IMG/VR virus record: IMGVR_UViG_3300036770_004723
Location: 186,001-250,000 of that record
DNA length: 64,000 nucleotides
Direction: 5' to 3' (one strand)
Shown: positions 7,555 through 43,260 of the stretch, in pieces
Numbering within the stretch: the first letter of the stretch is position 1
Layout of the letters: each line of letters opens with the position of its first letter
Notes under the pieces: model-generated
The model's database searches: none
What the model saw: the letters and a program-made list of their open reading frames with translations, nothing else
Told to the model about the DNA's origin: nothing
Translations under genes and position numbers: made by a program

Positions 7555-9843
7555 ATGACCATTAAAAAACGAGGCAAAAAACTGCCAATCGTTGTATATG
7601 GCAAGTCTGAGTCAGATGCTACTGGGTTGTACTCTGCTGTCGCTTCAGGCGATGGCGTCGTTTCACTTAGTAATGGTGTTCAATCAATTTTAACCCATGA
7701 AAGTTTAAGCGAAGCATTGTACAATCCTATGACAGGTCAAATCGATCTGGAAGAAGATGTAGAAATGACTGCAATGGCAAGCACAGCGCAACCATTAACA
7801 GGTACTGTTAGTATTTTCAGTGCAGAATGTTCTGATGGGTGCGGTAATCATATTATCAGCGACATCAATTTATCTTTCTGTCCTTCATGTTCCGCAGACC
7901 TTCCTGAAGATGAAGAAGAATCTGAAGTTGATTTAGTTGACGAAGAAGATTCAGATCTTGACGAAGAAGATTCAGACATCGACGACGATTCAGACATCGA
8001 CGACGATTCAGACATCGACGAAGATTTAGACATCGACGAAGATTTAGAATCTGAATCTAATGAAAGTATGATTGTTGTTGCAGCGGATTCATTGGCTGAA
8101 GCGGTAGCTCAGTTTCGCCAAGTAGCCAGCCAACAAGATCGTAAAATTTTTGCATCTGAGTCTGGTTCATTTGTTTCGCATTCAAATTCTGAAGTGAATT
8201 ACGATCCAATCACCAGCGATTTTGCGGAAGAAGTTGAAGGCGATGTTACTATTGTCAGCGAATCTTCTACATCCGATGAAATCGAAGCAGATCATTTAGT
8301 TTGTTCTGGTTGTAACGCACACCACATCAGTACAAGTTCTGCAATTGTAAATTGTATTCGTTGTGGTGAAGGCTTAATCGAATCCGAAAGTGCTGATCTT
8401 GATGAAGATGACTCCGAATCTGAATTGGCTTCTTTAGCTTCTGAAATTGAAGAATTAGAAGCTGAATTAGACCTCGATGAAGATGAAGATTTTGATCTGG
8501 ATGACGACGATCTAGAATCAGAATCTAGTGATGAAGACGATCTTGATATTGATTCTTTGCTATCTGAAGCTAGCGATCTTCTTGAAGAGTTTGAGGACAT
8601 CGAATTTAATTCTGAATCCTCAGATGATCTGGATGAAGATTTAAGCGATTATGATATGGATCAAGAAGAAGACCTTGATGCAGATGATTTGCTTGAATCC
8701 GAATCTTTTGCTGAAGGTAACGAATTTGGATCTTGTTCATCAGATGACGAAGATATTGATTTAGATATTCTAGATGAAGAAATTTCAGCTTTGGATTCTG
8801 ACGACTTGGAATCTGAAAGTGCCGATTTTGAACTGGATGAAGATTTAATTGATCTGCTTTCTGAGTCAAGTGACGACGAAGACGAAGACGAAGACGAAGA
8901 AGATTTTAGCCTCGAAGATTTAGATACAGATATGCCGGAAGACGAAGACGAAGACGAAGACGATTCTGACATTGAAGGCTTCGACATTGAAGATAGCTTA
9001 GATGAAAAAGAAATGGCGTCTGAATCTATGTCTTTCGATGTAGATCTACTGAAAGCATTATCTGCTACTGAAGATCTGGATGTTAAAAAATTCCATGTTG
9101 CTCACTGTGGTAGTATTGAAGGCCAGTCCACTTGGACAGCATTCTACGGTAAATTCCCAGTAGCCATGTGTTCAGAATCTAACGTCAACGAAAACACGGC
9201 ACTGAAAAATATTTTCGAAAGCGCTAAATTCGGTGAAGCGGTTAAGGCACATGCTAATGCTTCAGGTATTGACGATGCACTTACACAATTCAAGTTTGAA
9301 AGAATTAATCCTGAACTTGAAGTCGATGCAATTGTATCACAAGAACTGGTTTCACAATGTGAAGCTCGTGTGAATGAAGCAAATGAAGCATTGAATGCTG
9401 CGTTGGCCGGTGTAGATGCTGCTAAAGATCAGGAAGTTGAACAACAACTTGATCGTGTTATGGAAGCACTGTCTGCAAGTTCATTAGGTATCAACCGTGG
9501 CGTATTTGTAGGATCTTCAAATCCAATTGCAATGCGTCTAATTTCGGCATTAAGTGCTGCTGGTATTAATCCAGACAACGCAGCTGATTTAGTAAATGAT
9601 GCTTTCACTCAAGCTGGTGATACTTATGCAGAACAACTGTTAAGTCATGCACGTAGCTTGTTGGAAAAACCTGAAGATGTTGCTCAAGCAGTAATCGAAC
9701 AAATTGTTGCTACCGCTAATAATCGCATTGTTATTCCAAAAACACATGTTGAAGTAAGTGACAAGAAAACTCAGCCGATGCAATCTGAATCTTCTTCAAA
9801 AGCTTCAGCTTCTAATCACTTCCTTGCTATCCTTGAAAATTAA
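7555..9843 (+). CDS. Acidic prohead scaffold/core protein with two Zn-ribbon-like units
   Basis: Two genes upstream of the MCP; extreme D/E content; 14 SES motifs; two four-Cys clusters. Confidence 0.65.
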   Translation: MTIKKRGKKLPIVVYGKSESDATGLYSAVASGDGVVSLSNGVQSILTHESLSEALYNPMTGQIDLEEDVEMTAMASTAQPLTGTVSIFSAECSDGCGNHIISDINLSFCPSCSADLPEDEEESEVDLVDEEDSDLDEEDSDIDDDSDIDDDSDIDEDLDIDEDLESESNESMIVVAADSLAEAVAQFRQVASQQDRKIFASESGSFVSHSNSEVNYDPITSDFAEEVEGDVTIVSESSTSDEIEADHLVCSGCNAHHISTSSAIVNCIRCGEGLIESESADLDEDDSESELASLASEIEELEAELDLDEDEDFDLDDDDLESESSDEDDLDIDSLLSEASDLLEEFEDIEFNSESSDDLDEDLSDYDMDQEEDLDADDLLESESFAEGNEFGSCSSDDEDIDLDILDEEISALDSDDLESESADFELDEDLIDLLSESSDDEDEDEDEEDFSLEDLDTDMPEDEDEDEDDSDIEGFDIEDSLDEKEMASESMSFDVDLLKALSATEDLDVKKFHVAHCGSIEGQSTWTAFYGKFPVAMCSESNVNENTALKNIFESAKFGEAVKAHANASGIDDALTQFKFERINPELEVDAIVSQELVSQCEARVNEANEALNAALAGVDAAKDQEVEQQLDRVMEALSASSLGINRGVFVGSSNPIAMRLISALSAAGINPDNAADLVNDAFTQAGDTYAEQLLSHARSLLEKPEDVAQAVIEQIVATANNRIVIPKTHVEVSDKKTQPMQSESSSKASASNHFLAILEN
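7939..8052 (+). repeat. In-frame 18/21-bp tandem repeats encoding DDDSDI/DEDLDI units
   Basis: GACGACGATTCAGACATC-like units repeated within the scaffold CDS. Confidence 0.85.
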
Positions 9844-9861
9844 GTTCAATCGGAGAATACT

Positions 9862-10554
9862 ATGTTAACTATTAACAGTCGTTACTTTAAAAGTGTAGAC
9901 CGTACAATGCTTGAAGGTTCTGATGTAAAAGGTGACGGTCAGATCTTAGTTCTTGTAAATGAAAACGGTGTAACTTGTGCCCGTCCATCTACAGGTGTAG
10001 GTAAAGAAATTTTTGGCGGTATTTTGATTAGTTCTCAATTACCGCAAACCCACGGTTCAAACGTTGAAGAATTTAAAATCACAAGTTCTTCAGTTCGTTT
10101 AGCCCGTAAACCTGAATCAAGTCAGTTACTGGTACGTGTGGACGGCAGTAAGAAAACAGTTACTACCGGAACAGCTGCACCTGTTGATGCAACTAAAGTA
10201 ACATTGACACCTAACGGTGAATTAATGTTCCACGCTGACCACTTGAATAAAGCAGGTTTCGTTCAATATCACTATGAATTAACTGCAAGTGAAGCCCGTG
10301 CTTTAACCGGCGATTATTTCGCAGGCGTACACAATACACCAGTATATTCTACAGGCGTTGCGGCTGCCGGTGTTGAAGGTACGTACCAAACAGATATGTT
10401 CGATGCTTCAGCAGATTGGTCGGGTATCATTCACCCATTTATTGGTGCTGATGGCCGTTTTGCTGCTGACGGTGATACAGAATTAACTAACGTAAAAATC
10501 ATGGAATCACCTAACTCAGGTTCTCCATTCTTGACTGTTGAAGTCGGCAATTAA
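9862..10554 (+). CDS. Virion structural protein (head decoration/minor capsid-like)
   Basis: Lies between scaffold and MCP; beta-rich and Gly-rich; SD GGAGA. Confidence 0.55.
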   Translation: MLTINSRYFKSVDRTMLEGSDVKGDGQILVLVNENGVTCARPSTGVGKEIFGGILISSQLPQTHGSNVEEFKITSSSVRLARKPESSQLLVRVDGSKKTVTTGTAAPVDATKVTLTPNGELMFHADHLNKAGFVQYHYELTASEARALTGDYFAGVHNTPVYSTGVAAAGVEGTYQTDMFDASADWSGIIHPFIGADGRFAADGDTELTNVKIMESPNSGSPFLTVEVGN

Positions 10555-10595
10555 TTTTAATTTTCCAATTCTGAAATTCGCTGGAGCATAAAAGT

Positions 10596-11684
10596 ATGAG
10601 TAATTTAGTCAAAGGTAAAACTTTCAGTCTGCGTAACGGCGCACCGGTGACAGATCTGAAATTCAAAGGCAGCAACATGACTGCTCTTTCAAGTAACGGT
10701 GAAGTGAACGCAAATGACAATCGCGATCTGATGCACAAAATCGGCCAGCTGTTACAGTCTGTATCATCTGGTGAAATTGTTCAACAAAATGTAGGTGCAT
10801 TTGCTTCTTTATCAAATTCAGATAAAGTAAATTTGATCGCTGTTGCAAATTCTGATAAAGATAAATGGGCTGCTTTAGGTGCATCTATCGCACAAGAAGT
10901 ACGTGAACAGCAAACTCGTCAAGGTTTTTTACGCAGCATGACTGTTGTTGAAAACATGAAACAAGGCGAAGTAATGCGAGTTCCTATGCCTAAGCATGGC
11001 GGACGCGCTATTGTTGCAACTGGCCCAACTGCATTGCAGTATCAGTTAATTAATGATCGTTACTTTACACCTAGCCCGTTTGAATTAAAAGCTTCGGTAC
11101 GTGTAAGTAAGTTAGAAATGGTGCAGGCAACGCACGATTTATTAGACCATGCTTACAATGAAGCTGTTGAAGGTATGGTAACTGCCGGTGATCGTATTTG
11201 GAAAAGCGCTGCTGATCGTACTGTTGGTAAATCAAACAATTTGGTTGGTTTTAGCGGTGCTTTAACTCCGGCAGTTATTTCTCGTGCTGCTTCACGAATT
11301 CGTGAATGGAATCTTCCTGTATCTCGTGCAGTTATTGCTGCAAGTTTTTGGGAAGATATCCAATCTGAAAGTTCATGGGCAACTGCACTGACTCCAGTGT
11401 CACAGTACGAATTACTGTTAACTGGTAAGATTGCAACTATCTTCGGTCTGGATCTGATGACTGATGGTTTCCGTCCTGAAAACCAACGTGTGTTGACACG
11501 TAACGATGCTTATATTGTTGCTGATTCTGAATATCACGCTACTATGGGTTCGTTTGGTGGTATTGAAAGTACTCCAACTGATGGCTCCAACAACGGTGAA
11601 ACTACCAAAGGTTGGTTACTGTCTGAAGTAATGTCTTTCGTTATTCCTAACACACGTTCAGTTATCAAACTGCAACGTATCTAA
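10596..11684 (+). CDS. Major capsid protein
   Basis: 362 aa; position after scaffold and decoration genes; HK97-like features (GKIATIFGLDLMTD, GWLLSE near C-terminus); SD GGAG; followed by a terminator. Confidence 0.8.
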   Translation: MSNLVKGKTFSLRNGAPVTDLKFKGSNMTALSSNGEVNANDNRDLMHKIGQLLQSVSSGEIVQQNVGAFASLSNSDKVNLIAVANSDKDKWAALGASIAQEVREQQTRQGFLRSMTVVENMKQGEVMRVPMPKHGGRAIVATGPTALQYQLINDRYFTPSPFELKASVRVSKLEMVQATHDLLDHAYNEAVEGMVTAGDRIWKSAADRTVGKSNNLVGFSGALTPAVISRAASRIREWNLPVSRAVIAASFWEDIQSESSWATALTPVSQYELLLTGKIATIFGLDLMTDGFRPENQRVLTRNDAYIVADSEYHATMGSFGGIESTPTDGSNNGETTKGWLLSEVMSFVIPNTRSVIKLQRI

Positions 11685-11797
11685 TGATTAAAATGTCGGC
11701 TTAAATTAAAAATCCTTATTACTCTCCCTTAATATCGCCGACTAAGTACTGAGCTAGAAAAACTCTCACTTTCTAATTAAACTCGGTAAATTAATCA
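11685..11797 (+). ncRNA. Structured 3'-UTR element (three-way junction with twin C-rich loops)
   Basis: TGATTAA/TTAATCA closing stem; GTCGGC/GCCGAC and TACTGAG/CTCGGTA arms; loops ACTCTCCCTT and ACTCTCACTT. Confidence 0.45.
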
Positions 11798-11798
11798 C

Positions 11799-11842
11799 AA
11801 GAACCCGTATCGAGATATTCTTGGTACGGGTTTTCTTGTTTA
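11799..11842 (+). terminator. Intrinsic terminator after the MCP
   Basis: AAGAACCCGTA...TACGGGTTTTCTTGTTT. Confidence 0.8.
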
Positions 11843-11853
11843 AGGATCTTATA

Positions 11854-12534
11854 ATGGAAATTCAAAACTATATACTTGCGGATGATGCAGACTACGATCA
11901 ATTTTCAGGTACTTTAGTAGGTATATCTGTAATAACTGCTAAATTAAAGCAGTTGTTTAAATTTAAACATATTCCATTAGTATTAAATGATAACTGGCAA
12001 GGTGCATTAACGAAAGCTTATGGTATTGCAGATAATATTGAAAAAAAATTGCCGGATCCTTATTGCTATCTAAAAGTAAGTTCTTTTGGTGTTCGTGACG
12101 ACGCACATAACTTAAACCAGTCTATGCGGAATGGTACTGGATTTAATACACGAGGATCTGATACTGGTGATTTAAGTAATGCCTTACTTGATATGCAGTA
12201 TTTTGCTTGGGCCAAAGTTAACATAGAGCTTTGTGTTGGTTTCAGAAATCCAATTGCTTTTTTTGCTTTCTGCGAAAAATTGAGTATTGCTATACGCGCA
12301 CGTAGATTAAGTGCGTCCGCAAATTTTGATGGAAACGTTTTTGATGTATATGCAGATCCACAGCAAAGCGAAATATCTCCAACTATGATGACAACCGATG
12401 ATGCAACTACTGCTGGTTGGTTAACGTTAAATCATGCCCTTACCGTACACACCCAATTCGGTACATCTATCGCAGTCGCTAAACTTAATAATGAAGGAAT
12501 TATAACTAACAATGTAGAGGTGATCCGTGAATAA
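11854..12534 (+). CDS. Putative neck/tail-completion protein
   Basis: Between MCP and sheath; start moved to ATG 11854 after AAGGA. Confidence 0.45.
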   Translation: MEIQNYILADDADYDQFSGTLVGISVITAKLKQLFKFKHIPLVLNDNWQGALTKAYGIADNIEKKLPDPYCYLKVSSFGVRDDAHNLNQSMRNGTGFNTRGSDTGDLSNALLDMQYFAWAKVNIELCVGFRNPIAFFAFCEKLSIAIRARRLSASANFDGNVFDVYADPQQSEISPTMMTTDDATTAGWLTLNHALTVHTQFGTSIAVAKLNNEGIITNNVEVIRE

Positions 12535-12919
12535 AAATTCAAGAATATCTCAATTGAGACAAACAGGAAGAACCTTAACCACGTCCTTTGCTGTTGTATC
12601 TACAACTATAAACACAAAAGATACTAAAATTCGAGGGGACGACAGTGTTAGAATAACCGTAAGCGATAGACTAGTAGAGCAAGAAATTGCCTTATCTGTT
12701 TCAACTGAATTTGAGTTACCTATAAATTGCGTTAGTAAAATACTGGCTATAACTTCTGCACATAAATTTAAAATATTTTACAGAGCTGTTGAAACACAAG
12801 ACTATATATTTTTTGCGGTCTGCGATAAACAGTTTTTATTTAATGGTGCCTTACTCGGTCAATTTAAGATTGTAGGTGAGTACGATATTGAAACCTTAAT
12901 CAAAATTATTTACGCTTAG
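12527..12919 (+). CDS. Hypothetical structural-region protein
   Basis: ORF with GAGG SD, overlapping the previous stop. Confidence 0.55.
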   Translation: MNKNSRISQLRQTGRTLTTSFAVVSTTINTKDTKIRGDDSVRITVSDRLVEQEIALSVSTEFELPINCVSKILAITSAHKFKIFYRAVETQDYIFFAVCDKQFLFNGALLGQFKIVGEYDIETLIKIIYA

Positions 12920-12977
12920 TAAGAATGTCTCTAATTTATACTAGAGACTGAAAAAACGCTTTTTAGGAGCAAAACAC

Positions 12978-14597
12978 ATGATAGCGCCCAACAATCCAAG
13001 CGCTGGTGTCTATACATCTGAAATAGTTATTCCTGAACGTAGTACATCAACTTCTGTATCAACAGGTGTTATTGTAACTGCTGCTACACGCGGCAGAGTT
13101 ATGGAAAGAACGTTTTTAGGTGATAAAGGCGATCTGCGTAATAAATTCGGACCTAAAGTACCAAAACTTACTAAAGCACTTAATTGTGCTGAGCATTTTT
13201 TGAAAGAAAGTAATTCTCTTTATTTGACTCGTGTGGCAAGAAATGCCTTATATGCAGGACTGCTTGTTCGCACGTCTTCGAATTTTGCTACAACAGTTAA
13301 AATAAGTTCAGGTGTAGTTGATCCTAATGTAGTAGGCATGACTGAAGCAGATATCATGTTTATATACGCGGATAACCAAGGTAAATGGGGCAACGATGTT
13401 TATGTTGTACTTTATCCTGACACCACAGATGTAGATGGACATCAATTTATTTTAGAGGTATATGAAGGAATTTCTACAGTGCCTGTAGAAAGATACTCAT
13501 GTACTTCCTTCTATAAAAAAAGTGATAATGGTTCGCAGCTTTTTGTGGATGATGTTGTCAATTCTAAATCAACACGTATCAAAGTAAGATCAAACCAAAA
13601 TCATTTTGCTTTCGGTAGTAATTCTACTCCATTATTGATCAATGCTATTATAGGTGGTCCTTATGATAGAACAACTGGAAAATACAACGGCCAGTTATTT
13701 GGCGGTACTGATGGAGACCCTATTACAGTAGGCGATTTGATTCGTGGTTGGGATTTATATGCTGACTATGAAAAAGTTGATATTGATATTTTAATGTCAG
13801 CTGGCTATACCGATTTAGCTATAATGCACAAAATGAATGACATCGCTGCACAGCGTTTAGATTGTATTGCTGTATTTGATGCACCTGAAAGTTTAACAGG
13901 TGCAAGTGAGTTAGTAAATTTCAGACGTAATATCTTGAACATGAATAGTAGTAGTTCTGCTATTTATACACCACACGTTAAAGCTTTTGATAGTGATAAT
14001 AGCTTAAGTTACTTCGTACCTCCGTCTGGTATGGTTGGTGGTGTTTTTGCAAAAACTACAGAAATCGCAAGATCTTGGTTTGCACCTGCTGGCTTAAATC
14101 GAGCTATTTTAACAGATGTTCAAGAGTTAGCTGCTTATTATGATCAAGGTGATCGTAATATGCTTACACAAAATCAGATAAACTTCATCATTGAAAAGTC
14201 TGGCCAAGGTAATGTGATTTGGTTAGCAGATACTTTGTACGGTGGAGGCGGCGCAATGCAAGATATCGGTGTACGTCGATTACTTGCAATATTGCACCGT
14301 ATTGTACGTAGAGCGCAGTTAAGATCGATTTTTCAACCTAACGACGACTTTTTACGTAGACAGATCAGAGATGAAATGGTTGCCTTATTAGATCCTATAC
14401 AACGTGATCGTGGCCTAGATTGGTACGATGTTGTATGCTCTAAACAAAATAATTCAAATGACGGAATTGCGAACGGAGATTTAGTTTGCGATGTTTATCT
14501 TGATCCTACACGTTATACAAAACGTATTCACTTAAATGCTATCATTCCTAAGAAAGGTCAGATTTCATTTGCTGAAACTATAGGAGATAGACCTTAA
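12978..14597 (+). CDS. Contractile tail sheath protein
   Basis: AGVYTSE N-terminus; PPSG..GVFA; WFAPAGLNRA; VRRLL; FQPND; gp18-like motifs. Confidence 0.93.
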   Translation: MIAPNNPSAGVYTSEIVIPERSTSTSVSTGVIVTAATRGRVMERTFLGDKGDLRNKFGPKVPKLTKALNCAEHFLKESNSLYLTRVARNALYAGLLVRTSSNFATTVKISSGVVDPNVVGMTEADIMFIYADNQGKWGNDVYVVLYPDTTDVDGHQFILEVYEGISTVPVERYSCTSFYKKSDNGSQLFVDDVVNSKSTRIKVRSNQNHFAFGSNSTPLLINAIIGGPYDRTTGKYNGQLFGGTDGDPITVGDLIRGWDLYADYEKVDIDILMSAGYTDLAIMHKMNDIAAQRLDCIAVFDAPESLTGASELVNFRRNILNMNSSSSAIYTPHVKAFDSDNSLSYFVPPSGMVGGVFAKTTEIARSWFAPAGLNRAILTDVQELAAYYDQGDRNMLTQNQINFIIEKSGQGNVIWLADTLYGGGGAMQDIGVRRLLAILHRIVRRAQLRSIFQPNDDFLRRQIRDEMVALLDPIQRDRGLDWYDVVCSKQNNSNDGIANGDLVCDVYLDPTRYTKRIHLNAIIPKKGQISFAETIGDRP

Positions 14598-31062: not shown

Positions 31063-31611
31063 ATGAAAATCTTAATTAGCCTATCAAACGAAAAAATAAA
31101 TAAGAGTAGCGCAACGTTCGGTCCACTTACTGTAGTAGCGAATTTTGCTAACAAAAATATGTACAGTTGTACATGGGCAAATAAGATGAAAAATTCATCT
31201 ACTATATTGACCAAACTTGGATTTAAAAGCTATAGTGTCGTAGTAACTGGTCCAAATTTGCCTGAAAGTTCTCAAGCTTTTAAAGATTTAACTTCAGCTG
31301 CTTTAGGTTTCTTTAGTAATTGCAGTACAGTGCGTTTAGAAGACCTTAATATTGTTAATGGCAGGAAATGGGCAGCGGATTGGATCAAAAACGTAGAAAA
31401 TGTTTCTACGTTAAATGTACGTCTTGACATTAGAAGTAGAGAGCGCGACAATCTTCATATTCCTGTAACTGTAGGAACTGATGTTAAACGGCGCGGTGTA
31501 TTACTGTCTATTACTGAAATGAGTGCTAAATGCCGTGTAATGTTATTAAATGCGGATGGCAGCAATGGTAATGTTCTTGAATTGCCAAAAGATCAAATTT
31601 GGATTGAATAA
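31063..31611 (+). CDS. Putative head protein with SxS leader
   Basis: MKILISLSNE. Confidence 0.6.
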   Translation: MKILISLSNEKINKSSATFGPLTVVANFANKNMYSCTWANKMKNSSTILTKLGFKSYSVVVTGPNLPESSQAFKDLTSAALGFFSNCSTVRLEDLNIVNGRKWAADWIKNVENVSTLNVRLDIRSRERDNLHIPVTVGTDVKRRGVLLSITEMSAKCRVMLLNADGSNGNVLELPKDQIWIE

Positions 31612-31620
31612 GGAATAGCT

Positions 31621-34428
31621 ATGTTTCCTATGGTGCAGCAGTACTTAAAAATAGTAAATGATTTAGGATTAGTTCCTTTCGTTTCTTTAAATACCTCTAA
31701 TCAAACTTCAGTTAGTGAAGTAAATTCTGTTAATAGATTGACCTCTGTAGAAAAAGACTCTAATAGTCTTTCATTTATACCTCAACTGTGTATCGATCAA
31801 GATACTGGATACATGAAAGATGATGTTACAGGCGTTTATTATACTTTAAATAGGCTTTATATAGGAACACGGCCTGTAACAGTTTTCTTAAAAGCTTTAG
31901 ATATAGATCCAGAACTAGCTTTACCTAGTCATTTAGTTTGCTCTGTCGGGTACAGTAAAAAACTAAATGAATGGGTTGCTTGGAATTTGACAGGTGCCGA
32001 TTCTTTTTGCAGTCGTGAGGCAGCAGTTTCCTGGGTAAATGAAACATCCAACGTAAACATTGATCGTTATTGTAGTCTTGATAAAATGTTTGCTAGTGCT
32101 GTAATCACATCTAGAGTATTTTTTAAAGCCTTGGATTGCTATTTTGGTAACATTACAGAATCCTTACCTGTAGCCGAATATAAAGAGCAGAATCTAGATA
32201 AAATTTTTGAACACATAGATCTCGATCTAGATAAAATTTTTGAAAACTGTAACGAAAAAGATTCAGGCGCGTTCAATGAAATGGTCGAGCCTTTACTAGC
32301 TTTATTTAAACAAAAAGACGTAGAAAAATCTAAATTTATCTCAGATACTGCTAGGTCTGCAAATCCATTGTACTACCGTATAAGTGGAGAACATAGACAA
32401 CATAATAGAAATATGCCTAAACAAGCTTTGACTGGTCAAAGACACAGCGGCGCACATTATCAACATAATGTACCAACTGATTCAAACCTAACCAAACCAC
32501 ATACTGGAATAAAAATAGGAATTAAAAGAAGTGGTGATCATGTCCAACATAATCATACTGGACCTACTTTTAGTTCTTTGAATAATGAAAGTTTTGTATC
32601 AGAAAGTGCCGAAGATCCAACCAAATATGAATGGTATCGTTATGTTCCAGTTAATGGCCGTAGTATTAGCCTTAAAGGATATCATAAAGAATTTGATCAG
32701 GCCAGTATAGATGATACAGAAGTTTACGGTATTAGACAAATTCGAGGCAAAGAAGAATTCTACTTGACCTTTGGTAATGCTCAAGATTTCGGTATACTTT
32801 TCAGGGTTCCTACTGCTTTGGTTAATCGCGCTATAAAAAATAGCAAAACATATAAAGGTAAGGTTCCTTTAGGTAGAGCAGTAAAGCCTGTTGATGTAAA
32901 AGAAGTGAAGCCTTCTCAGGTTAAAGAAAAAGTAAATAAAATAGTACCAAAAACTGAAAAGCCTTTAACTATAAAAGAACGTCGTGAGGCAGAAAGGCAA
33001 AGACTTTTAGAAGAATCTAAAAATAAGCGACTTCAACCTCAAGTACGCGACCAAGTTATACGTCCCGATGGCAAGATTAATTTAAGTGACATTGATGCCA
33101 TTAATGTTAAATCGCGCGATGTTACATATTTAGGTCTTTACCAACAAAGCATATTCTCAGACGATTACCATGTAGTAATTAATGACGAACGCGATGAATT
33201 ATATTCAAACATAATGAGTGAAATAACTCGCGGTAAGAATAGTAATCCTATAGCGTATTTATTTCGCGTTAGAACAAGTCAAGATTGGGTAGCCCCATAT
33301 CTAGGTGTATCCGCTAATAAGATGCGTATGAACAGTGCTATTGTTAAACGGATAATTGCTTCAAATAAACACGAAGTAATTAAAGGCATTAAAAACGTAG
33401 CAAACTTTGATGAAAAGCCTGAGCTACCTAAAGCAAGTAAGTTCAAACGTGCTGAACCTATTTATTACGGCAATAACTTTGCCGTACTTTCTGAAATAAA
33501 ATCTGCGATTCTCCAAGGCTATTTCACTAAAGCATTCAAAGTAACCGATATTAAAAATCGCAAATCTGTTACTATTGACGATGAAAAAGCCAAGAACGAT
33601 CCGCACTTTGGTATTGAGTCTACGGATACAGATGAATTTATGTTAGTGCTTTCTGCACAAAACAATAATCCGTTCTATCAACATGAAGCAGACGAGATAC
33701 TACAAAGACTTTCACGTATTTATGGACCTACTATTAGAACTGTAGTAAAAGAAAGTAAAACAAGTGAAGGTAAGTTAATGATGTTCGTGGTTATACGTTT
33801 GGCCTTGAAAAAGGTCAGCGATGAACACTTACATAGAAGTAAAGCACTGCATGATCTTGTAAGAAATAATCTAAACAATAAACAGCAAGTGCAGAAAGGC
33901 AGCGATTTTGTTGAAAAACTGGACACATTAAAATCTGAATTCAACAAACTTTACAAGAAATATGAACAAGAAAAGATTCAGGTATCTGCAAAACGAAGCC
34001 ATGAAGAATTGAACTTAAAAACTGAGATCGACAAACTTAAGTTACAACTTCAAGCCAAAGGCACAGCTAATGTAAGACCTATTCTGGATAAGCACGATAA
34101 ACTTGTTCAACAATTAAGTAAATTGCCTGCTAAATACGACGACATGTTAAAAACGGTTGAAGACATTTATTCGGAAGAAATATCTAGGCACCAGCGAGAG
34201 ATTCGTGTTTTAACAAAATCACATTCGTTGAACTTTAAAAATCAATTGATCTTTAATATGCCTGTATACAAAGCCAAATTTGGCCAAACCTTGGTTAGTG
34301 TGGAGGTTGTTGACTACAATATACCTGACGGCACTGTCGGAGTTCGTATTGTACGTGGCGGTGATAGAACAGTCCATTATATAACAAACTTATATTCATT
34401 TTTCGATGAAGAAAAAGTTTTCCCTTAA
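31621..34428 (+). CDS. Large multidomain putative virion protein
   Basis: 935 aa; three SGxHxQHN repeats; internal FVSESA followed by a domain shared with 15865; C-terminal coiled coil. Confidence 0.6.
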   Translation: MFPMVQQYLKIVNDLGLVPFVSLNTSNQTSVSEVNSVNRLTSVEKDSNSLSFIPQLCIDQDTGYMKDDVTGVYYTLNRLYIGTRPVTVFLKALDIDPELALPSHLVCSVGYSKKLNEWVAWNLTGADSFCSREAAVSWVNETSNVNIDRYCSLDKMFASAVITSRVFFKALDCYFGNITESLPVAEYKEQNLDKIFEHIDLDLDKIFENCNEKDSGAFNEMVEPLLALFKQKDVEKSKFISDTARSANPLYYRISGEHRQHNRNMPKQALTGQRHSGAHYQHNVPTDSNLTKPHTGIKIGIKRSGDHVQHNHTGPTFSSLNNESFVSESAEDPTKYEWYRYVPVNGRSISLKGYHKEFDQASIDDTEVYGIRQIRGKEEFYLTFGNAQDFGILFRVPTALVNRAIKNSKTYKGKVPLGRAVKPVDVKEVKPSQVKEKVNKIVPKTEKPLTIKERREAERQRLLEESKNKRLQPQVRDQVIRPDGKINLSDIDAINVKSRDVTYLGLYQQSIFSDDYHVVINDERDELYSNIMSEITRGKNSNPIAYLFRVRTSQDWVAPYLGVSANKMRMNSAIVKRIIASNKHEVIKGIKNVANFDEKPELPKASKFKRAEPIYYGNNFAVLSEIKSAILQGYFTKAFKVTDIKNRKSVTIDDEKAKNDPHFGIESTDTDEFMLVLSAQNNNPFYQHEADEILQRLSRIYGPTIRTVVKESKTSEGKLMMFVVIRLALKKVSDEHLHRSKALHDLVRNNLNNKQQVQKGSDFVEKLDTLKSEFNKLYKKYEQEKIQVSAKRSHEELNLKTEIDKLKLQLQAKGTANVRPILDKHDKLVQQLSKLPAKYDDMLKTVEDIYSEEISRHQREIRVLTKSHSLNFKNQLIFNMPVYKAKFGQTLVSVEVVDYNIPDGTVGVRIVRGGDRTVHYITNLYSFFDEEKVFP

Positions 34429-34475: not shown

Positions 34476-35255
34476 ATGCCTGAGTCTTCTTTATTGCATA
34501 TACTATACACAAAAATAGAAAATAAAACTTTAACTTTACCTACTTTGCCTGATGTTGCTGTTAAAGTAATGTCTATTATTGACGCACCTGAAATAAATTC
34601 TAGCGATCTGTGTCGTGCTATAAGTAGAGACAGTGGCATATCCATTAGACTGATAAAGCTTGCCAATTCCGCACATTTCGGCCGCAGCATTAAGATAACT
34701 ACACTACAGCAAGCTGTAGTTCGTTTAGGTTTCAGGCAAGTAAGATCTCTGGTGATTGCTATGGCTATGGAGCAATTATTTATAAGTACAGACTCTGTTA
34801 TACATAACAAATTGCAAAGTATATGGCATGATTCAATTAGAATTACTTCTACAGCAATGGCCTATGATTTTATAATGCACAGAGGTAAATACAGCGATAC
34901 TCTTATGCTGTTAGGTACTACATGCAGACTTGGTATGCTTACTGTACTAACTGAAATCGAAAAAACATTTAGCGCCGATATATTCCCAAAGGTTGATTAT
35001 ACAAATTTAACTATTATTGAAAAACCTATACTTCTATCTCTATTTAAGCATTGGGAATTTCCTCAAGAACTAATTAATATACTAGTTAGTTATTTTGACC
35101 GTGCTGCTGTTTGTCCGCAATCTTGTGGTTTAATTTATGCAGATAAATTTGGAGATAAAAAATTTGAAGAATGTTCTGAGTTGGTTGAATTAGATAAAGA
35201 TATATTTGATAAGATATCAGAACTAGCTAAACAATTTAATAGTATTTTGAGGTAA
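34476..35255 (+). CDS. HDOD-domain protein (host-like)
   Basis: LPTLPDVA; D..ISIRLIKLANSAHF; LQQAVVRLG; HWEFPQEL. Confidence 0.88.
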   Translation: MPESSLLHILYTKIENKTLTLPTLPDVAVKVMSIIDAPEINSSDLCRAISRDSGISIRLIKLANSAHFGRSIKITTLQQAVVRLGFRQVRSLVIAMAMEQLFISTDSVIHNKLQSIWHDSIRITSTAMAYDFIMHRGKYSDTLMLLGTTCRLGMLTVLTEIEKTFSADIFPKVDYTNLTIIEKPILLSLFKHWEFPQELINILVSYFDRAAVCPQSCGLIYADKFGDKKFEECSELVELDKDIFDKISELAKQFNSILR

Positions 35256-35257
35256 CT

Positions 35258-36928
35258 ATGAAAAGCAATTTACTGTCTATTTCCGCAGTATCAAAACAAT
35301 CCACATTAGCATTTATTAAAATTATTTCCGCTGCTTCTGTTGCATTTATGGAAAATTCGCCTTTATCTTCTTCTATTAAGTCTGATTTAAGATCGTGGAA
35401 TGCTGATGCTTCTGAATTCATCAAAAGATTTAATTTAGATAAAAAAGCTTTCTCCCGTATCATATCACAGCTGCAACTCGATAAAGTTAATCTTGTTGAT
35501 GAAATAGGTGACGTAATGGTAGGTGTGCGTGAAGCACATAGATCAAAAGAACTTATCAAAGAACTAGATCTGAGTAAGCTTCATTTGGATTTTTTAAAAT
35601 GCTTGATAAGTGTTACTTTAGGCGGCAGTGAAACAGCTGTTAAGAACTTATATAAGAATATAAGTAAGTTAGGTGATCCGAAGTTAAGTGCTTTATTTAT
35701 GCAGGAAACTGAATTAGATCAAAGTGATTTAGTTGCAGAACTCTCAAGATTTTGTAAAAATGTTTTCAAAAAGCCCGAACAAGATCTTAATGTAGAAGAT
35801 AAGAATAAGTTAAAGGCTAAAAATCCTGAACTCTATAAAGAATATTTAAAATTGTTACGTGATATTAATGAAGTAACCAAACAAGCTGTTAGTCAATTTG
35901 TACGTAACTCTGGCCAGCAATTAGTAAAAGCCACGGAACTCGTTAGATATTTGAAGACTAATAAAATCCGATCTAAAGTACCTGAAGGCTTTAATGGCTG
36001 GATAGATGAAACAGGTGCTTATTACAACACAAATAAAGTAAAGCTAGAAGGTGCCATTACAGGCAGATTGGAAGCAAATCCAAAATATGATCCTACAACA
36101 GATGATACATACGTATTCTTGCATTATCCACTATTTGGATCAGGGCAGCCTCAACGTATCTACACTGTTAATTACAGAAAAGGTAAAGTGAGTAAAAAAT
36201 TTAATGCTGTAGGTGCATTAATTAAAGATTTACCTGCGGCACGTAAAAAATGGTTACATGAGTTAAAAACTGGAAAACACAATGAAGCAGATACTGTTGC
36301 AGCCTTAATTCTTGAATTGATTTATGAAACTTCTGCACGTATCGGAACAGCAGGACAAAGCGGTCAAGGTATTAGTACACTATTAGTCAAAAACTACACA
36401 GGTAGAGGCCAAGGTTATTTTACACTTAATTATTTAGGTAAGAGTGGTGTAAAACAGAATCATAAAATTCTGACTAATCGCATTGAAACCAAACTTTTAA
36501 AAGAACTGTTAGAATCATTGACTACAGGTAAAAAACCTAATGATTTGATCATGACTGTGAATAAAGGAAGAACCGAAAAACACATTAACGGTACTTACGT
36601 TAATAAATACCTTAGATCTTTAGGTGTTGATCCAAGTGTTACCCTTCACAAATTCCGCCATGCCCGAGGATCTATTGTTGCTCAAGCTCAATTAGATAAG
36701 GCTCCGTCATTCAAAAATGCTTCGGAAGCAGAAGTAAATAAATGGTTTATTGAAGCAATGAAGAAAGTCGGATCTGAGTTAGGTCATGTTAGCGGCGATA
36801 AAGTCACTGCCACTACTGCAATCCAAAACTATATTGATCCGCAGTTAATTAAAGATTGGTTTGATAAAGTTGGTGTAAGACCAGGCAGTGTTATTCAAAA
36901 TGCACTTAATAAGGCAGGTAAGGATTAA
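35258..36928 (+). CDS. DNA topoisomerase IB with long N-terminal extension
   Basis: Catalytic pentad SARIG (R), YLGKSG (K), HKFR (R), LGH (H), NYIDP (Y). Confidence 0.8.
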   Translation: MKSNLLSISAVSKQSTLAFIKIISAASVAFMENSPLSSSIKSDLRSWNADASEFIKRFNLDKKAFSRIISQLQLDKVNLVDEIGDVMVGVREAHRSKELIKELDLSKLHLDFLKCLISVTLGGSETAVKNLYKNISKLGDPKLSALFMQETELDQSDLVAELSRFCKNVFKKPEQDLNVEDKNKLKAKNPELYKEYLKLLRDINEVTKQAVSQFVRNSGQQLVKATELVRYLKTNKIRSKVPEGFNGWIDETGAYYNTNKVKLEGAITGRLEANPKYDPTTDDTYVFLHYPLFGSGQPQRIYTVNYRKGKVSKKFNAVGALIKDLPAARKKWLHELKTGKHNEADTVAALILELIYETSARIGTAGQSGQGISTLLVKNYTGRGQGYFTLNYLGKSGVKQNHKILTNRIETKLLKELLESLTTGKKPNDLIMTVNKGRTEKHINGTYVNKYLRSLGVDPSVTLHKFRHARGSIVAQAQLDKAPSFKNASEAEVNKWFIEAMKKVGSELGHVSGDKVTATTAIQNYIDPQLIKDWFDKVGVRPGSVIQNALNKAGKD

Positions 36929-38424: not shown

Positions 38425-38772
38425 ATGAAAATCTTTGTTTCTACATCAAATAATGCACATGAACAAGCTGGTAAAAATGTCAAAGTAGCTGTTGCATTTG
38501 CTTATAACAAAACAAATAATAAAGAATTGGATATAGTAGTTAATTTACGTAATGAACTCACTATCTACGTTCAGTTTCTTACAACAAACAAAAACATTCA
38601 GAGCAATCTTACTAATTACGTTCTTAAGAAAACAGTCGCTGATGAACTTAATGAAAAATTTGGTTCTGATTTTGATGAAGGCTTTATATCAAGTGGCGGT
38701 CCTGAAGGTGTGTCTGTTCAATACACAGCACGTACAACCTTAGGAAAGTTATTGAATAAGCAAGGACAATAG
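38425..38772 (+). CDS. Putative internal head protein with SxS leader
   Basis: MKIFVSTSNN. Confidence 0.6.
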   Translation: MKIFVSTSNNAHEQAGKNVKVAVAFAYNKTNNKELDIVVNLRNELTIYVQFLTTNKNIQSNLTNYVLKKTVADELNEKFGSDFDEGFISSGGPEGVSVQYTARTTLGKLLNKQGQ

Positions 38773-38775
38773 GTT

Positions 38776-39144
38776 ATGTATATTTGGATGTCTGCTATCT
38801 TAGCTTCTTTGTGTGTGCAAATACCGAATGTATTAGCTATATCAAAATACGGTAACGGTATAATATTAAAAGAGGCAATTACATTATCTTTATTGTGCCT
38901 ACCCTTTACTTTCGTAGCCTGTATATGCTACATGTATTTTTATTCGAATATCGCATTGAAGATCAGCTACCCTTCAGCTATTTTAATTCTGTACGCACTG
39001 AATTTATTGATAGCTACTTTAGTGCAAGGCTTTATACTAAAAACAAAATCTATGTATTTGGTGGATTACATATCAGTCAGTTTGATTTTAGTGGGATTAG
39101 TTTTAACAGTATTAAGAGAGCAGATTAAAGGATACTTTTCATGA
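38776..39144 (+). CDS. Four-helix membrane protein (SMR/DMT-like topology)
   Basis: Four hydrophobic segments in 122 aa. Confidence 0.55.
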   Translation: MYIWMSAILASLCVQIPNVLAISKYGNGIILKEAITLSLLCLPFTFVACICYMYFYSNIALKISYPSAILILYALNLLIATLVQGFILKTKSMYLVDYISVSLILVGLVLTVLREQIKGYFS

Positions 39145-40925
39145 AACGTATTAGAGTAAATTTGGAGAGTATAAGTGCTTTAAAGCCTTCTCAGTATAGA
39201 CAATTTGTACGTGGTTGGAAGCCAAGTCAAGATTTTTTAACCATATTTAGAAGAGAATCCAAAGGCAAGTCTCCATTTCGTGTACTAATAAGCCCAGAGC
39301 AAAACGCCATTAACTTAAAATCTATTATACCTAAAGAACTAATGGAATACTTGTTAAAAAATAACTATAATATGGACCTTATAGGTTACGTGACGGGCTA
39401 TGTAAATGATAAATATGGACGAAAACAAAAGTTAGGTAAAGTAATAGCGGATCATCCGAATCTTTTAAATCCCTTTAACTCCGACGAAAGCCGCAAAAAA
39501 GATTTGATGGAATTAAATAAAGAAAGTTTTGTCGTTGCCATAAGTCACCACCCCTATGACATAGCAGGTATGAGTACAGATCGCGGATGGACAAGTTGCA
39601 CTAATCTATTAGGTGAGTATGAAAAATCTGCACCTATGAAAGTACAACCTGAAATAGATAACAAAAGTATAATAGCCTATTTAGTACGTAGATCAGATAT
39701 TAATATAAATAAGCCTGTGGCCAGAGCTATAGCTAAAAAATTTGTAAGTGATGCAGGTTCCGAGAAATATGTAATTGACGCTGTTTATCCTGATAGAAAC
39801 CCTTCTCTTATAAATACTTTCCAAAAATGGCTAGATAAAAACATAAATTCAGGTCTGAAAAAAGTCCCGAATGATTTTTCAATGTACACTTTGCCTTTCG
39901 GTATGTATTCTGACGGATTTTCTGACACCGAAATTGTTAACGGGTTTTCTGAAACAGCTGACGAAGAACAACTATTAAATTTGTTTCAGGGCATAGAATA
40001 CTTACCTTCATACTCTAATATGTCAGCTTTTGTATCCGCCCATTACAATAATAAAAAAGCTTTGTCCAAGATAAAGAATGATGATATGTATAGGTCTCAA
40101 TTAATAACGTATTGTCTGAGATTTTTAGACTTATTTGACACAAACAAGCTTAACAAATTCATAGTAAATTTGTTAACAGATATGTACGATAATCGCTATC
40201 CATTTGAGGCCGCTGTATTAATAGCTAAATATTTACCTAGACGCAAAATTACAATACTGTCTCTAGATGAATCAAATAAATTACTTGATAATATGTTTAA
40301 AAGTCGAGAAGCCAAAGATTCTATTAACTACGCAAAGCTGCATGGTGGATCTGCCATTAACCTATTTAAAATAGGACTTTTGGCCTTTTTATCTTATGAA
40401 ACGAAGCCTTTGAATTGTTTTTCACGGTTATATGCAAACTGCCTTAACCCAGAAGATATTTTGACGCCAATGTTAGATAAAAGTTTTGAAATAACAAAAG
40501 AGTACGGAAGATTTTTAGCTGCGGCTATAATGGCACAATCTCCTTACGTAGATAAGAAAAAACTATATATTAAACTGTTTCAAGATCCTAAAATAAACTT
40601 TAACTGGGCCGATGAATATTCAGTTGTTTTGTTACATAGATCACAGCCTAAAGAAAGCAAGCTAGGTGTAGAACTTACTATCATGACAAATTTATTGAAT
40701 GACGTGAATGTTAATGTATTAAATGTATACACGGATGTTTTGATAAAATGTATAAAAGAACTTGAGTCGCTTCTTTCGGATAAAACTACAAACGTATTTA
40801 AGTACAATCAAAGGTATCTTCAAAATAATCTTAATAGGTTAGAGGTGCTTGGTGATATTGAAGGTTTGGCCTTTCTTAATCTTGTTATCAATCAATGCCC
40901 TAAGGTTGACTATTGGCTAAACTGA
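39141..40925 (+). CDS. Large putative virion protein with SxS leader
   Basis: MKRIRVNLESISA; conserved-looking ISHHPYDIAGMSTDRGWTSC core. Confidence 0.6.
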   Translation: MKRIRVNLESISALKPSQYRQFVRGWKPSQDFLTIFRRESKGKSPFRVLISPEQNAINLKSIIPKELMEYLLKNNYNMDLIGYVTGYVNDKYGRKQKLGKVIADHPNLLNPFNSDESRKKDLMELNKESFVVAISHHPYDIAGMSTDRGWTSCTNLLGEYEKSAPMKVQPEIDNKSIIAYLVRRSDININKPVARAIAKKFVSDAGSEKYVIDAVYPDRNPSLINTFQKWLDKNINSGLKKVPNDFSMYTLPFGMYSDGFSDTEIVNGFSETADEEQLLNLFQGIEYLPSYSNMSAFVSAHYNNKKALSKIKNDDMYRSQLITYCLRFLDLFDTNKLNKFIVNLLTDMYDNRYPFEAAVLIAKYLPRRKITILSLDESNKLLDNMFKSREAKDSINYAKLHGGSAINLFKIGLLAFLSYETKPLNCFSRLYANCLNPEDILTPMLDKSFEITKEYGRFLAAAIMAQSPYVDKKKLYIKLFQDPKINFNWADEYSVVLLHRSQPKESKLGVELTIMTNLLNDVNVNVLNVYTDVLIKCIKELESLLSDKTTNVFKYNQRYLQNNLNRLEVLGDIEGLAFLNLVINQCPKVDYWLN

Positions 40926-40941: not shown

Positions 40942-41457
40942 ATGCGAATATTTATATCACTTAGCTCAAGTATTTACTTTCGAGGTTTGACAGAAAAATT
41001 CTCTAAAGCATATCAAGACAAATCTCATATTATTTGGGTAACACCTGACAAAAGCTACGCACAGAACTACACAGAGGCCGAAGGAAGTTTGTTGACATAC
41101 GATCTTAAACTAGGCACTGCGTTTAACTTTGGATTTAGATCGTTAGATACTAGCGTTAAAATACAAGAAGTTTTGTCCCGCGTACAGCGTGGTATATTGT
41201 CTGCTTTCAGAGAAAAGATTATTGATCGTGATTTAGCAATGAAGCTAAATGATGAAGTAATAGATCTAATTGAGAAACATGAGAAAAGTAATAAATATAT
41301 GAAGGTATGGGAATGGTACTCTAAGGAGAAGAACATTTCTAGCATTTTGTTACGTGCTAAATTTACTCACATAGATGCAATGGAAGGTATTGATAACAAT
41401 ATAAAAACTATTGGCATTCTTGATAGAAACATTATTAAGAAAATACAGATGATATAA
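40942..41457 (+). CDS. ADP-ribosyltransferase-like protein with SxS leader
   Basis: YFRG strand, IWVTPDKSYAQNY, late acidic residue, ILDRNIIK end; ART-fold pattern. Confidence 0.5.
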   Translation: MRIFISLSSSIYFRGLTEKFSKAYQDKSHIIWVTPDKSYAQNYTEAEGSLLTYDLKLGTAFNFGFRSLDTSVKIQEVLSRVQRGILSAFREKIIDRDLAMKLNDEVIDLIEKHEKSNKYMKVWEWYSKEKNISSILLRAKFTHIDAMEGIDNNIKTIGILDRNIIKKIQMI

Positions 41458-41460
41458 TAG

Positions 41461-41487
41461 AAAAAGCCGCTTAAATTGCGGCTTTTT
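41461..41487. terminator. Bidirectional terminator at the convergence of the two arms
   Basis: AAAAAGCCGC-TTAAATT-GCGGCTTTTT. Confidence 0.85.
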
Positions 41488-41534
41488 CTATTATACAACT
41501 GAGTAAACTATACTGTAACTTCTTTTAATGAACC

Positions 41535-41870: not shown

Positions 41871-42118
41871 TTTCTATCCTTCCATTTTGCGAAGTCGTCA
41901 ATTTGTTTGAATATTTGGTCAGCACTAAAGTCAAATTCTTTGGAAGGTATTATGATAGTTCCCATTGATGTAGCTAAAGGATCTGCTTCATAGAAAGGTA
42001 TGAAAAGTCGTGCCTCTTTCTCATACATAACTATCATAAAAACATTAGAACTTAATCTACCTTTAAACCTGCTTTCTATCAGGCTTTTAAGTTTGTTTAA
42101 CTCTAATAATATACTCAT
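41867..42118 (-). CDS. Hypothetical protein
   Basis: ATGA-coupled ORF. Confidence 0.55.
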   Translation of the reverse strand: MSILLELNKLKSLIESRFKGRLSSNVFMIVMYEKEARLFIPFYEADPLATSMGTIIIPSKEFDFSADQIFKQIDDFAKWKDRK

Positions 42119-43260
42119 GATTCGCCCTTGTTAATCAAGTCTACTCGATCCATTAGATCTTGGGCTATTTCTTCAGCATCGTTATCATTTAACATTGAGT
42201 CCAGTGTCGAACAGAAATCATGAATTTCGTACACAAGGTCATCAAATTTATTATTTGTTTCGTCAAAATTAAAACATGAAATGTGTGCTTCAAATCCGGC
42301 AGCTTGTGGGTGGCCACCTCCGCCCATGTCAATTGCAATTGTATTAATTACAACATCATTCTTAGATCGTAAGCTTACTTTACACATGCCTTCACTTAGT
42401 ATGGTAATGGCTGCACCTATATGATTAGTTTCCGTGAATAGAATATTACAGGCTTCGGATCTAAATGATTGAGGTAAATTTACACAAGGAATTGTGTAGG
42501 TATTTCCCGATGTTTTACCTTTGAATGTAAGTAAAAATTTATTTTCAAGTGCTTCATTTAAAAAGCTTTGACGTATTTCTCTGGAAATAGTGCCCCTATC
42601 GAATAATTTAACAAATTTCTGATCTAAACTATTCATGTTTACTGTGGCAGCAGCTTCTTCTATTGTGAAAATAGTTTCATAGAAGCCCAACATGATTTCA
42701 TCTGTACCCAACATCTTTCTATGCCACAAATCTCTGTCTTGTGCGTGACGAATCATTCTAGGTAGGTGATCTAAATAATATTTTATATTAAAATATCTTG
42801 TTGCTTTTTCTGAATTAGTGTAGGCATTGAAAAAAGCAAAAGCTAATGCACAGCCACTGTATTCGGTATCAAGAATTCCCCAAATCTTTTTCTCTTGTAT
42901 AAGATGATTTAATTCCAGAACTCTAGGTTCATGGTGATCAATCAAACAGATTTTAACACCTGTCTCTAGAAGTGACTCAATTGTTTGTAGGTCAAAAGAA
43001 AAATCAACAAGGATAAGTAAATCACCTTTACCTAATTTCTTAGGTATCATTCCATATTTGTACGCAACATACTCAATTGGAATAGTTGATATTAGTGTAG
43101 TATGCTTCTCAGCAATTAAATCACTTTTTCCTGAATGCCATAGGTAAACACATGCAGCTGAAAGTAAACCATCAGTACAATCGGCATGATAATAAACACT
43201 AATATCAGTAACATCGTTCAACATACCTGATTTAATATTAATATTGTTGTTGGTATTCAT
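42115..43260 (-). CDS. DHH/DHHA1-family phosphoesterase
   Basis: YHADCTDG, VDFS, IDHH, SLRS, GGGGHPQAAGF. Confidence 0.9.
   Translation of the reverse strand: MNTNNNINIKSGMLNDVTDISVYYHADCTDGLLSAACVYLWHSGKSDLIAEKHTTLISTIPIEYVAYKYGMIPKKLGKGDLLILVDFSFDLQTIESLLETGVKICLIDHHEPRVLELNHLIQEKKIWGILDTEYSGCALAFAFFNAYTNSEKATRYFNIKYYLDHLPRMIRHAQDRDLWHRKMLGTDEIMLGFYETIFTIEEAAATVNMNSLDQKFVKLFDRGTISREIRQSFLNEALENKFLLTFKGKTSGNTYTIPCVNLPQSFRSEACNILFTETNHIGAAITILSEGMCKVSLRSKNDVVINTIAIDMGGGGHPQAAGFEAHISCFNFDETNNKFDDLVYEIHDFCSTLDSMLNDNDAEEIAQDLMDRVDLINKGES

Follow-up and report, generated by a model that had tools for sequence, protein, structure and literature searches.

A stand-alone ART-PolyVal-type ADP-ribosyltransferase of a jumbo phage carries an N-terminal octapeptide found on unrelated basic proteins

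Introduction

Is a 171-residue phage protein that starts with a short leader an ADP-ribosyltransferase (ART), and is it carried in the capsid and injected with the DNA? Injected phage enzymes act before phage gene expression and are thus prime candidates for pre-emptive anti-defense or takeover functions. To our knowledge, few of them have been defined outside T4 (Alt, IPI*). The gene considered here lies at 40942–41457 (+ strand) of a 64,000-nucleotide stretch, the window, which comprises bases 186001–250000 of the 286,584-bp IMG/VR record IMGVR_UViG_3300036770_004723. This is a single virus record with 34.6% GC that CheckV rates as 100% complete. The original prediction, made from the letters of the window, held that an ART-like cargo follows the leader MRIFISLS and resembles T4 Alt. 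Computational analysis of the gene, its homologs, and its leader was used to examine that proposal.

Results

Family assignment of the 171-residue protein

The open reading frame (ORF) at 40942–41457 (+) has an ATG start and a TAA stop. Its translation opens with MRIFISLS-SSIYFRG, contains IWVTPDKSYAQNY at residues 31–43, and has a late AMEG (E148-G149), exactly the motifs that the original prediction had quoted. The ORF, profile, and model evidence classify the product as a stand-alone ART-PolyVal-type ADP-ribosyltransferase of a subfamily termed R-W-E for the residues at its three active-site positions.

Megablast of the region against cultured phages gave no match. A tblastn search recovered full-length homologs with ~37% identity from 37 jumbo phages of Erwinia and Dickeya (Alexandravirus; AD1_189, Alexandra_199), every one of them annotated as hypothetical, and a word search added six metagenomic homologs with 46–79% identity. 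An exhaustive search with a profile of the close homologs returned 100 representative clusters, of which 85 had E ≤ 1e-10. Stand-alone family members of 158–175 residues are numerous. Proteins of 2,000–5,000 residues carry the domain too; in them PF18760 (ART-PolyVal, "ADP-ribosyltransferase in polyvalent proteins") coincides with the residues of the profile match and the partner domains are LPD1/5/23/37/39, MuF_C, PBECR5, and SLT. When the 85 members were scanned singly, 35 matched PF18760, with an E value of 3.2e-26 at best, and no second family came up repeatedly. Alignment of the 85-sequence alignment to three canonical ART-PolyVal domains by hhalign gave a probability of 94.8% and an E value of 4.9e-8 over 153 columns. 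A feature search of the ESM Atlas returned PF18760 clusters together with PF26151 (AcrIF11) clusters.

A PHROGs scan of the protein gave nothing useful, with weak noise on the helical part only. Searches of PDB sequences with the 9- and 85-sequence profiles returned chance helical matches only, and AcrIF11 gave no significant sequence match. The family profile detected the ART as a single copy in the genome; a search of the genome with canonical PF18760 found nothing, and its controls gave no match either.

The assignment rests on four independent routes: the transitive hidden Markov model link to PF18760 through the homologs, the hhalign result, the fold matches in the PDB and among viral structures described below, and the Atlas features. 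Together they make the ART fold and homology of the 171-residue protein nearly certain and bear out the ART-like identity that had been proposed.

Two relatives are unusual. A metagenomic protein of 366 residues (P0033) fuses a PF01467 cytidylyltransferase-like nucleotidyltransferase (residues 18–126) to the ART domain (residues 209–364), an arrangement that possibly couples NAD+ supply to NAD+ use. In Pseudomonas phage Lu11 (NC_017972, 159777–159938), a 150-residue ORF located ~3.5 kb downstream of topoisomerase IB matches only positions 10–66 of the family profile (E 2e-5) and may be a syntenic homolog that has degenerated or diverged strongly.

Predicted structure

An AlphaFold2 model computed with the 85-sequence alignment reached a predicted local distance difference test score (pLDDT) of 94.6 and a predicted TM score of 0.87; the pLDDT of an earlier model from a shallower alignment was 85.5. 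The chain is modeled as strand 10–16, helix 22–27, strand 31–34, helix 37–41, and strands 49–55 and 60–62, followed by helices 74–90, 96–112, 122–128, and 130–138 and by strands 143–148, 154–159, and 165–170. The Foldseek comparison with ART folds that had been suggested as a check placed AcrIF11 (6kyf) on top, with a probability of 0.99; 121/137 residues aligned with Z 6.8. Two diphtheria-toxin homologs aligned over 135 and 115 residues (Z 7.8 and 7.6), and SAIP, ParT, RhsP2, RES toxins, PARPs, and KptA were further ART-fold matches. Nearly all PDB matches that extend over the whole domain (Z 5.4–7.8) are to ART folds, and the non-ART rows are confined to the helical insert. Among the predicted viral structures of BFVD, 20 matches had E ≤ 1e-3, reaching 1e-6, and many were named ART-PolyVal-like. 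The proteins so named came from Yersinia, Brevibacillus, Dickeya, and Salmonella phages, and large polyvalent proteins were also among the matches.

One PDB match stands apart. Residues ~959–1602 of chain B of 9k3a, a large ejection protein in the pre-ejectosome of cyanopodophage A4, match the model over 128–129 residues (Z 7.2–7.3). The text of the 9k3a paper makes no mention of ADP-ribosyltransferase, so an ART domain may have gone unnoticed in this ejectosome protein of known structure.

Active site and the R-W-E subfamily

The three motifs named in the original prediction map onto the canonical catalytic positions of strand 1, strand 2 with its helix, and strand 5. In the hhalign register, R14, W32, and E148 fall on the H, Y, and E/D of canonical ART-PolyVal, and T34, A40, and Y43 fall on identical residues (T, A, and Y). 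Conservation, the model, and hhalign agree on the three elements. Strand 1 (residues 10–16, SIYFRGL; 40969–40989, +) contains R14 (codon 40981–40983) at the position of the canonical strand-1 His. Strand 2 and the next helix (residues 30–43, IIWVTPDKSYAQNY) occupy 41029–41070 (+). Strand 5 (residues 143–149; 41368–41388, +) contains E148 at the catalytic position (codon 41383–41385), followed by G149.

These columns are the most conserved among the 85 members: R14 in 79 (H in 4), G15 in 83, W32 in 83, Thr or Ser at 34 in all 85, A40 in 81, Y43 in 82, and E148 in 83. In the model the conserved residues sit on strand 1, on strand 2 and its helix, and where strand 5 ends. The strong constraint on R14, G15, W32, A40, Y43, and E148 argues that the protein is probably an active, NAD+-dependent ART. 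The W32-x10-Y43 spacing equals that of the two NAD-stacking tyrosines of diphtheria toxin.

The polyvalent-protein ARTs use H in strand 1, Y in strand 2, and D in strand 5 and belong to a clade, Tox-ART-HYD2, that is related to PARPs and diphtheria toxin (Iyer et al. 2017, PMC5512222). The present protein departs from this H-Y-D configuration, with R14, W32, and E148 at the corresponding positions. The full R-S-E signature (R in strand 1, S-T-S in strand 2, [EQ]-x-E ahead of strand 5) is lacking: R14 is present, but strand 2 reads W-V-T, there is no [EQ]-x-E, position 146 is an Ala that varies in the family, and the Pfam scan of the protein had no match to R-S-E families. Because strand 2 has the aromatic-x-T arrangement of diphtheria toxin and PARP and [EQ]-x-E is missing, the protein is not an R-S-E (Alt/cholera-like) enzyme. 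One family member, P0067, combines YHG with every feature of the subfamily and reaches 2.5e-24 against PF18760, and it bridges the R and H types. The protein thus represents a divergent ART-PolyVal variant of the R-W-E type, in which a helical insert (~residues 63–142) separates strands 4 and 5.

Conservation and the model place an FGFR motif (residues 63–66) and the helical insert at 41128–41367 (+). The subfamily-specific conserved positions are G64-F65-R66, D/E76, R80, and W125. The insert is a candidate target-recognition module because it is analogous to the variable helical region of AcrIF11, and by that analogy it probably recognizes the target.

An N-terminal octapeptide common to unrelated proteins

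Codons 1–8 (40942–40965, +) encode MRIFISLS, a tag that recurs on seven other ORFs and is a candidate capsid-targeting leader. The six-frame translation of the whole genome has eight copies of the pattern M-[KR]-[IV]-[LF]-[IV]-S-[LTQ]-[SN], each at the ATG of an ORF of 73–184 residues behind a ribosome-binding site; for the eighth copy this is a probable start. Seven of the 409 ATG-initiated ORFs of at least 70 residues carry it. Column shuffles predict 0.06, with 2 as the highest count in 2000 rounds; the excess is somewhat inflated by the post hoc definition of the pattern and is still large. Three of the other tagged ORFs are basic ORFans in the window: a 184-residue protein at 1115–1669 (+, MKIFVSQS), a 182-residue protein at 31063–31611 (+, MKILISLS), and a 115-residue protein at 38425–38772 (+, MKIFVSTS). 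The remaining four lie at genome coordinates 11604–12095 (−), 12387–12893 (−), 12890–13393 (−), and 124758–124979 (+).

Behind the tag, the eight proteins have unrelated bodies by BLASTP, save one weak pair (E 2e-4). All eight are basic, with isoelectric points of 8.9–10.1, compared with ~33% of the ORFs of the genome (P ~2.5e-4), and seven of the eight are ORFans in Pfam and PHROGs. The tagged ORFs lie among genes such as those for thymidylate synthase, RNase H, and topoisomerase IB. Selection acts on the tag as a peptide, because the codons differ among copies and nothing upstream is conserved. Residues 1–9 are low-confidence coil in both models. The domain copies in giant polyvalent proteins have no tag and align only from about profile position 7–12. 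Orthologs in related contigs and in Alexandravirus retain the tag; the Alexandravirus ART starts at TTG and reads MQ[IV]FVSLS, and phage Alexandra has at least one additional tagged protein. The leader is therefore a genuine tag common to unrelated proteins and outside the folded core, and strand 1 abuts it in the model, so that the first catalytic strand does sit directly behind the leader as proposed. By analogy with T4, the seven further tagged ORFs form a candidate set of head-targeted internal proteins.

Other explanations of the octapeptide were rejected. A DNA element or promoter does not fit, as the codons differ and upstream conservation is limited to the ribosome-binding site. The tagged proteins are not paralogs: apart from the one weak pair they have no similarity past residues 1–12, and the ART is single-copy. 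The octapeptide is not a core β-strand either, being coil in both models and absent from the distant homologs and domain copies.

Three of the tagged ORFs are adjacent to one another beside thymidylate synthase and RNase H. In some records (for example pEa_SNUABM_32 gp196, 139 residues) the Alexandravirus ortholog (L001:6001-6510, L002:6001-6510; P0121) is annotated from an internal start, so that the tag is lost, as is strand 1 and its Arg at the catalytic position.

Both the tag and the ART are missing from phage PaBG; Lu11 also lacks the tag and shows only the partial ART match. PaBG provides the only virion proteome in the wider phage group (14 abundant proteins); since it lacks both tag and ART, this proteome is no test of packaging. 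Searches of the genome for a gp21-type prohead protease with PF03420 and the T4 gp21 protein found nothing, and the controls gave no match either.

Leaders of homologs in T4-like phages

The stand-alone homologs differ in their N termini. Of the 39, 10 carry the octapeptide tag and ~14 a leader that resembles the T4 capsid-targeting signal (CTS), such as MKTFKQFITEK, MKTYKKFLNES, MKSFSQFINEK, and MKLFGEFISEA, directly before the Y-R-G strand. The leader ends 1–4 residues before strand 1 in all stand-alone cases. In the T4 record, IPII and IPIII begin with MKTYQEFIAE and IPI with MKTFKEFTST. The T4 literature reports that the first ten residues of IPIII suffice for head targeting, that residues 4 and 7 of the CTS control targeting, and that residues 8 and 10 control processing by gp21. 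It describes the T-even internal proteins as diverse basic anti-defense proteins with the CTS alone in common.

The homolog P0038, which is of the R-W-E type and begins with MKTFKQFITE, keeps F4, F7, I8, and E10, at the positions that experiments have assigned to targeting and processing. Its 91-kb contig is T4-like (T4-type portal, gp19-like tube, sheath, terminase) and was seen in more than 100 data blocks. The gene is one of seven unrelated genes in succession, flanked by the sheath and tube genes, that all open with this leader (MKTFKQFI.E-like). A second homolog, P0016, adjoins a gp5-like hub gene among T4-like structural genes. The CTS-type homologs have [IL]-x-E in the leader, and the genome of the window has essentially no T4-type CTS starts. 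From sequence, the same ART body thus appears on a T4-type CTS, fused within MuF-linked polyvalent proteins, and on a different tag in the jumbo clade. The subfamily occurs in polyvalent proteins of predicted virion delivery or with head genes; the neighborhood of the present gene shows no such association.

The seven-gene leader block spans 7783–13980 of JGI 3300008007 Ga0100386_10000085, and one further contig has the same block. It encodes R-type and H-type (canonical ART-PolyVal) ARTs, a 275-residue protein with a HELTH zincin-like motif, a DUF5662 protein, and others, and it resembles a large internal-protein locus.

Discussion

We lean toward the reading that this gene encodes a stand-alone, tagged R-W-E ART that is packaged and injected. 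The octapeptide would be a lineage-specific tag on eight unrelated small basic proteins, outside their folds, and its most likely role would be to target the capsid, as the CTS of the T4 internal proteins does. The ART would be built into the prohead, travel with the DNA, and modify a host macromolecule, a defense or takeover target, at the start of infection. Taken alone, packaging and injection of the ART in this phage have about an even chance by analogy. The best support for this step is the CTS in the same place on the homologs of T4-like phages, and the predicted virion delivery of polyvalent proteins that carry the same domain with MuF_C, SLT, and LPD domains supports it as well.

Several observations weigh against this reading. 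The presence of an ART fold is challenged by the structural matches, none of which is individually strong in the PDB (Foldseek E at best 1.6e-2, none reaching E ≤ 1e-3; Z below 8), and by the Pfam scan of the single sequence, which was blank at E ≤ 1. If the protein were no ART at all, the motif likeness and moderate fold scores would be coincidental. This view is already essentially refuted and has a negligible chance of being right: hhalign gives 94.8% over the whole domain with every catalytic column in register, 35/85 homologs score above noise on PF18760, BFVD matches with ART-PolyVal proteins extend to E 1e-6, and the whole-domain PDB matches are nearly all ART, with only the helical insert matched in the non-ART rows. 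The Arg in place of His is atypical for ART-PolyVal. An ART fold acting as an NAD+ glycohydrolase, a nucleic-acid ART, a 2′-phosphotransferase-like enzyme, or a non-catalytic NAD or ADP-ribose binder would fit the fold neighbors at similar Z, which include the RES and MbcT NAD+-degrading toxins, the RNA-modifying RhsP2, KptA/Tpt1, and diphtheria toxin-like proteins. A phosphate-rich (nucleic-acid) substrate would agree with the H-to-R and Y-to-W replacements and with the conserved R66 and R80 of the insert, and there is no E/Q-x-E motif, position 146 being variable. We consider this improbable, given that the nearest relatives, ART-PolyVal and AcrIF11, are predicted or shown protein ARTs and that the catalytic position holds an invariant Glu, in keeping with a transferase.

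The more serious competitor, which we still judge unlikely, is an active ART that is expressed inside the infected cell and not packaged, like T4 ModA/ModB or AcrIF11. The octapeptide could then be an N-terminal degron, a translation-start optimum, or a localization or assembly signal; Met followed by a basic and three hydrophobic residues resembles the ClpX N-motif-2, a degron. The ART gene lies in a DNA-metabolism-type block of early/middle-like character, conserved in relatives and away from the structural genes, and AcrIF11, the closest characterized small relative, acts catalytically from expression and is not known to be packaged. Such a context is weak evidence either way, because the T4 ip genes likewise lie outside the structural modules. 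The tag itself also speaks for expression in the cell, as it has no Glu cleavage motif: residues 1–17 contain no Glu and no [LI]-x-E cleavage site, and the first Glu (E18) lies beyond R14, where a gp21-type cut would destroy strand 1. The prohead proteases of T4, phiKZ, and SPN3US cut after Glu. Because of this distribution of Glu residues, either the tag stays on or the prohead protease of this phage has another specificity. Expression without packaging leaves unexplained the CTS-like leaders and structural-module position of the T4-like homologs, the basic ORFan nature of all eight tagged proteins, as in the T4 internal proteins, and the recurrence of the domain in MuF-linked polyvalent proteins.

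The packaged, tagged ART that we favor can be set against known systems. Like ART-PolyVal (PF18760; PMC5512222), it has a homologous domain with the same strand order and catalytic columns, and that family is also phage-borne, either stand-alone or inside virion-delivered polyvalent proteins with MuF_C, LPD, SLT, and PBECR domains. It differs in having R/W/E instead of H/Y/D, an extra FGFR motif, a ~70-residue helical insert, a single sequence below Pfam detection, and a separate N-terminal tag instead of a giant-protein fusion. AcrIF11 (6kyf; PF26151), an anti-CRISPR ART of phages and plasmids, is similarly small (~130–170 residues) with a diphtheria toxin-like core. Its key residues are the non-canonical H-F-H-D, and its variable central helical region is thought to bind the target. 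In contrast to the present protein it has different key residues, no shared leader tag, and no significant sequence match; nothing found here points to Cas8f or another CRISPR component as a target of the tagged ART. The diphtheria toxin and PARP catalytic domains are the best PDB fold matches and share the aromatic-x-[ST] strand 2 followed by A..Y. The present protein has Arg instead of His in strand 1 and no translocation or receptor domains, and the similarity is at the level of fold only (8–14% identity).

Head packaging, removal of a 7-residue N-terminal propeptide, and injection are established for T4 Alt in the T4 literature, and as a phage ART it serves as the functional model for the tagged ART. 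The analogy drawn in the original prediction stands in this functional sense, with packaging and injection suggested by the CTS on homologs, and falls as an evolutionary one: the present protein is of the ART-PolyVal lineage, and Alt is of the R-S-E Alt/VIP2 clade with a propeptide that gp21 cuts after Glu at a site without counterpart in the tag. Alt is also several-fold larger (~680 residues) and encoded near baseplate genes. IPI, IPII, and IPIII, which are internal proteins of T4, share with the tagged set a short N-terminal peptide common to unrelated small basic proteins outside structural modules; the tag MK-I-[LF]-[IV]-S-x-S is itself unrelated to MKTYQEFIAE and has no I-x-E processing site. 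T4 ModA/ModB are small phage ARTs (~200 residues) expressed during infection. Unlike the tagged ART they belong to the R-S-E clade, are not packaged, and share no leader.

We propose tentatively that the octapeptide is a previously undescribed capsid-targeting signal of PaBG/Alexandravirus-related jumbo phages that loads at least eight fast-evolving basic effectors, the R-W-E ART included, and that this ART subfamily was captured independently by at least two head-targeting systems in addition to the polyvalent fusion. If so, the subfamily would be a widespread injected host- or defense-modifying enzyme. The analysis assigns a class of function to a family that has everywhere been labeled "hypothetical protein", among others in ~37 genomes of Erwinia/Dickeya jumbo phages that figure in fire-blight and soft-rot biocontrol work. 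New elements are an R-W-E form of the ART of polyvalent proteins, which escapes Pfam when single sequences are scanned, and a testable candidate second system of capsid-targeting signals, complete with the list of its cargo. Should the tag act like the T4 CTS, it would be a handle to find injected effectors of jumbo phages by sequence alone and to load proteins into capsids.

Neighboring genes

The ART gene is the final gene of a long + strand block. A terminator-like hairpin of 19 pairs follows (41452–41496, both strands); it is bidirectional and common to the converging + and − blocks. The ART gene has an MmcB-like nuclease, a ~930-residue protein, an HDOD protein, and topoisomerase IB as neighbors, and this synteny is kept in relatives. 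A fixed partner gene (antitoxin, immunity protein, macro domain) was rejected, as the upstream neighbor differs among relatives: a 594-residue ORFan here, proteins of 599 and 622 residues in one relative, and one of 216 residues in another. The 594-residue ORFan (39141–40925, +) lies directly 5′ of the ART gene. It corresponds to the two tandem paralogs (599 and 622 residues) of the closest relative and is absent from another, and it is therefore a variable rather than obligate partner.

The larger neighbor, a 935-residue protein (31621–34428, +), matches the Thoeris inhibitor Tad6 below threshold (E 2e-5; 25.1 bits, where the cut-off is 27), and a weak KMPT-N match is seen in its ortholog. 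It is followed by a phage HDOD-domain protein (34476–35255, +) and a type IB topoisomerase (35258–36928, +), and in relatives the three genes keep their synteny with the ART. In the converging block, a DHH/DHHA1 phosphoesterase (42115–43260, −; phrog_4771, E 2.7e-51) could degrade nucleotides or oligonucleotides relevant to signaling-based defenses.

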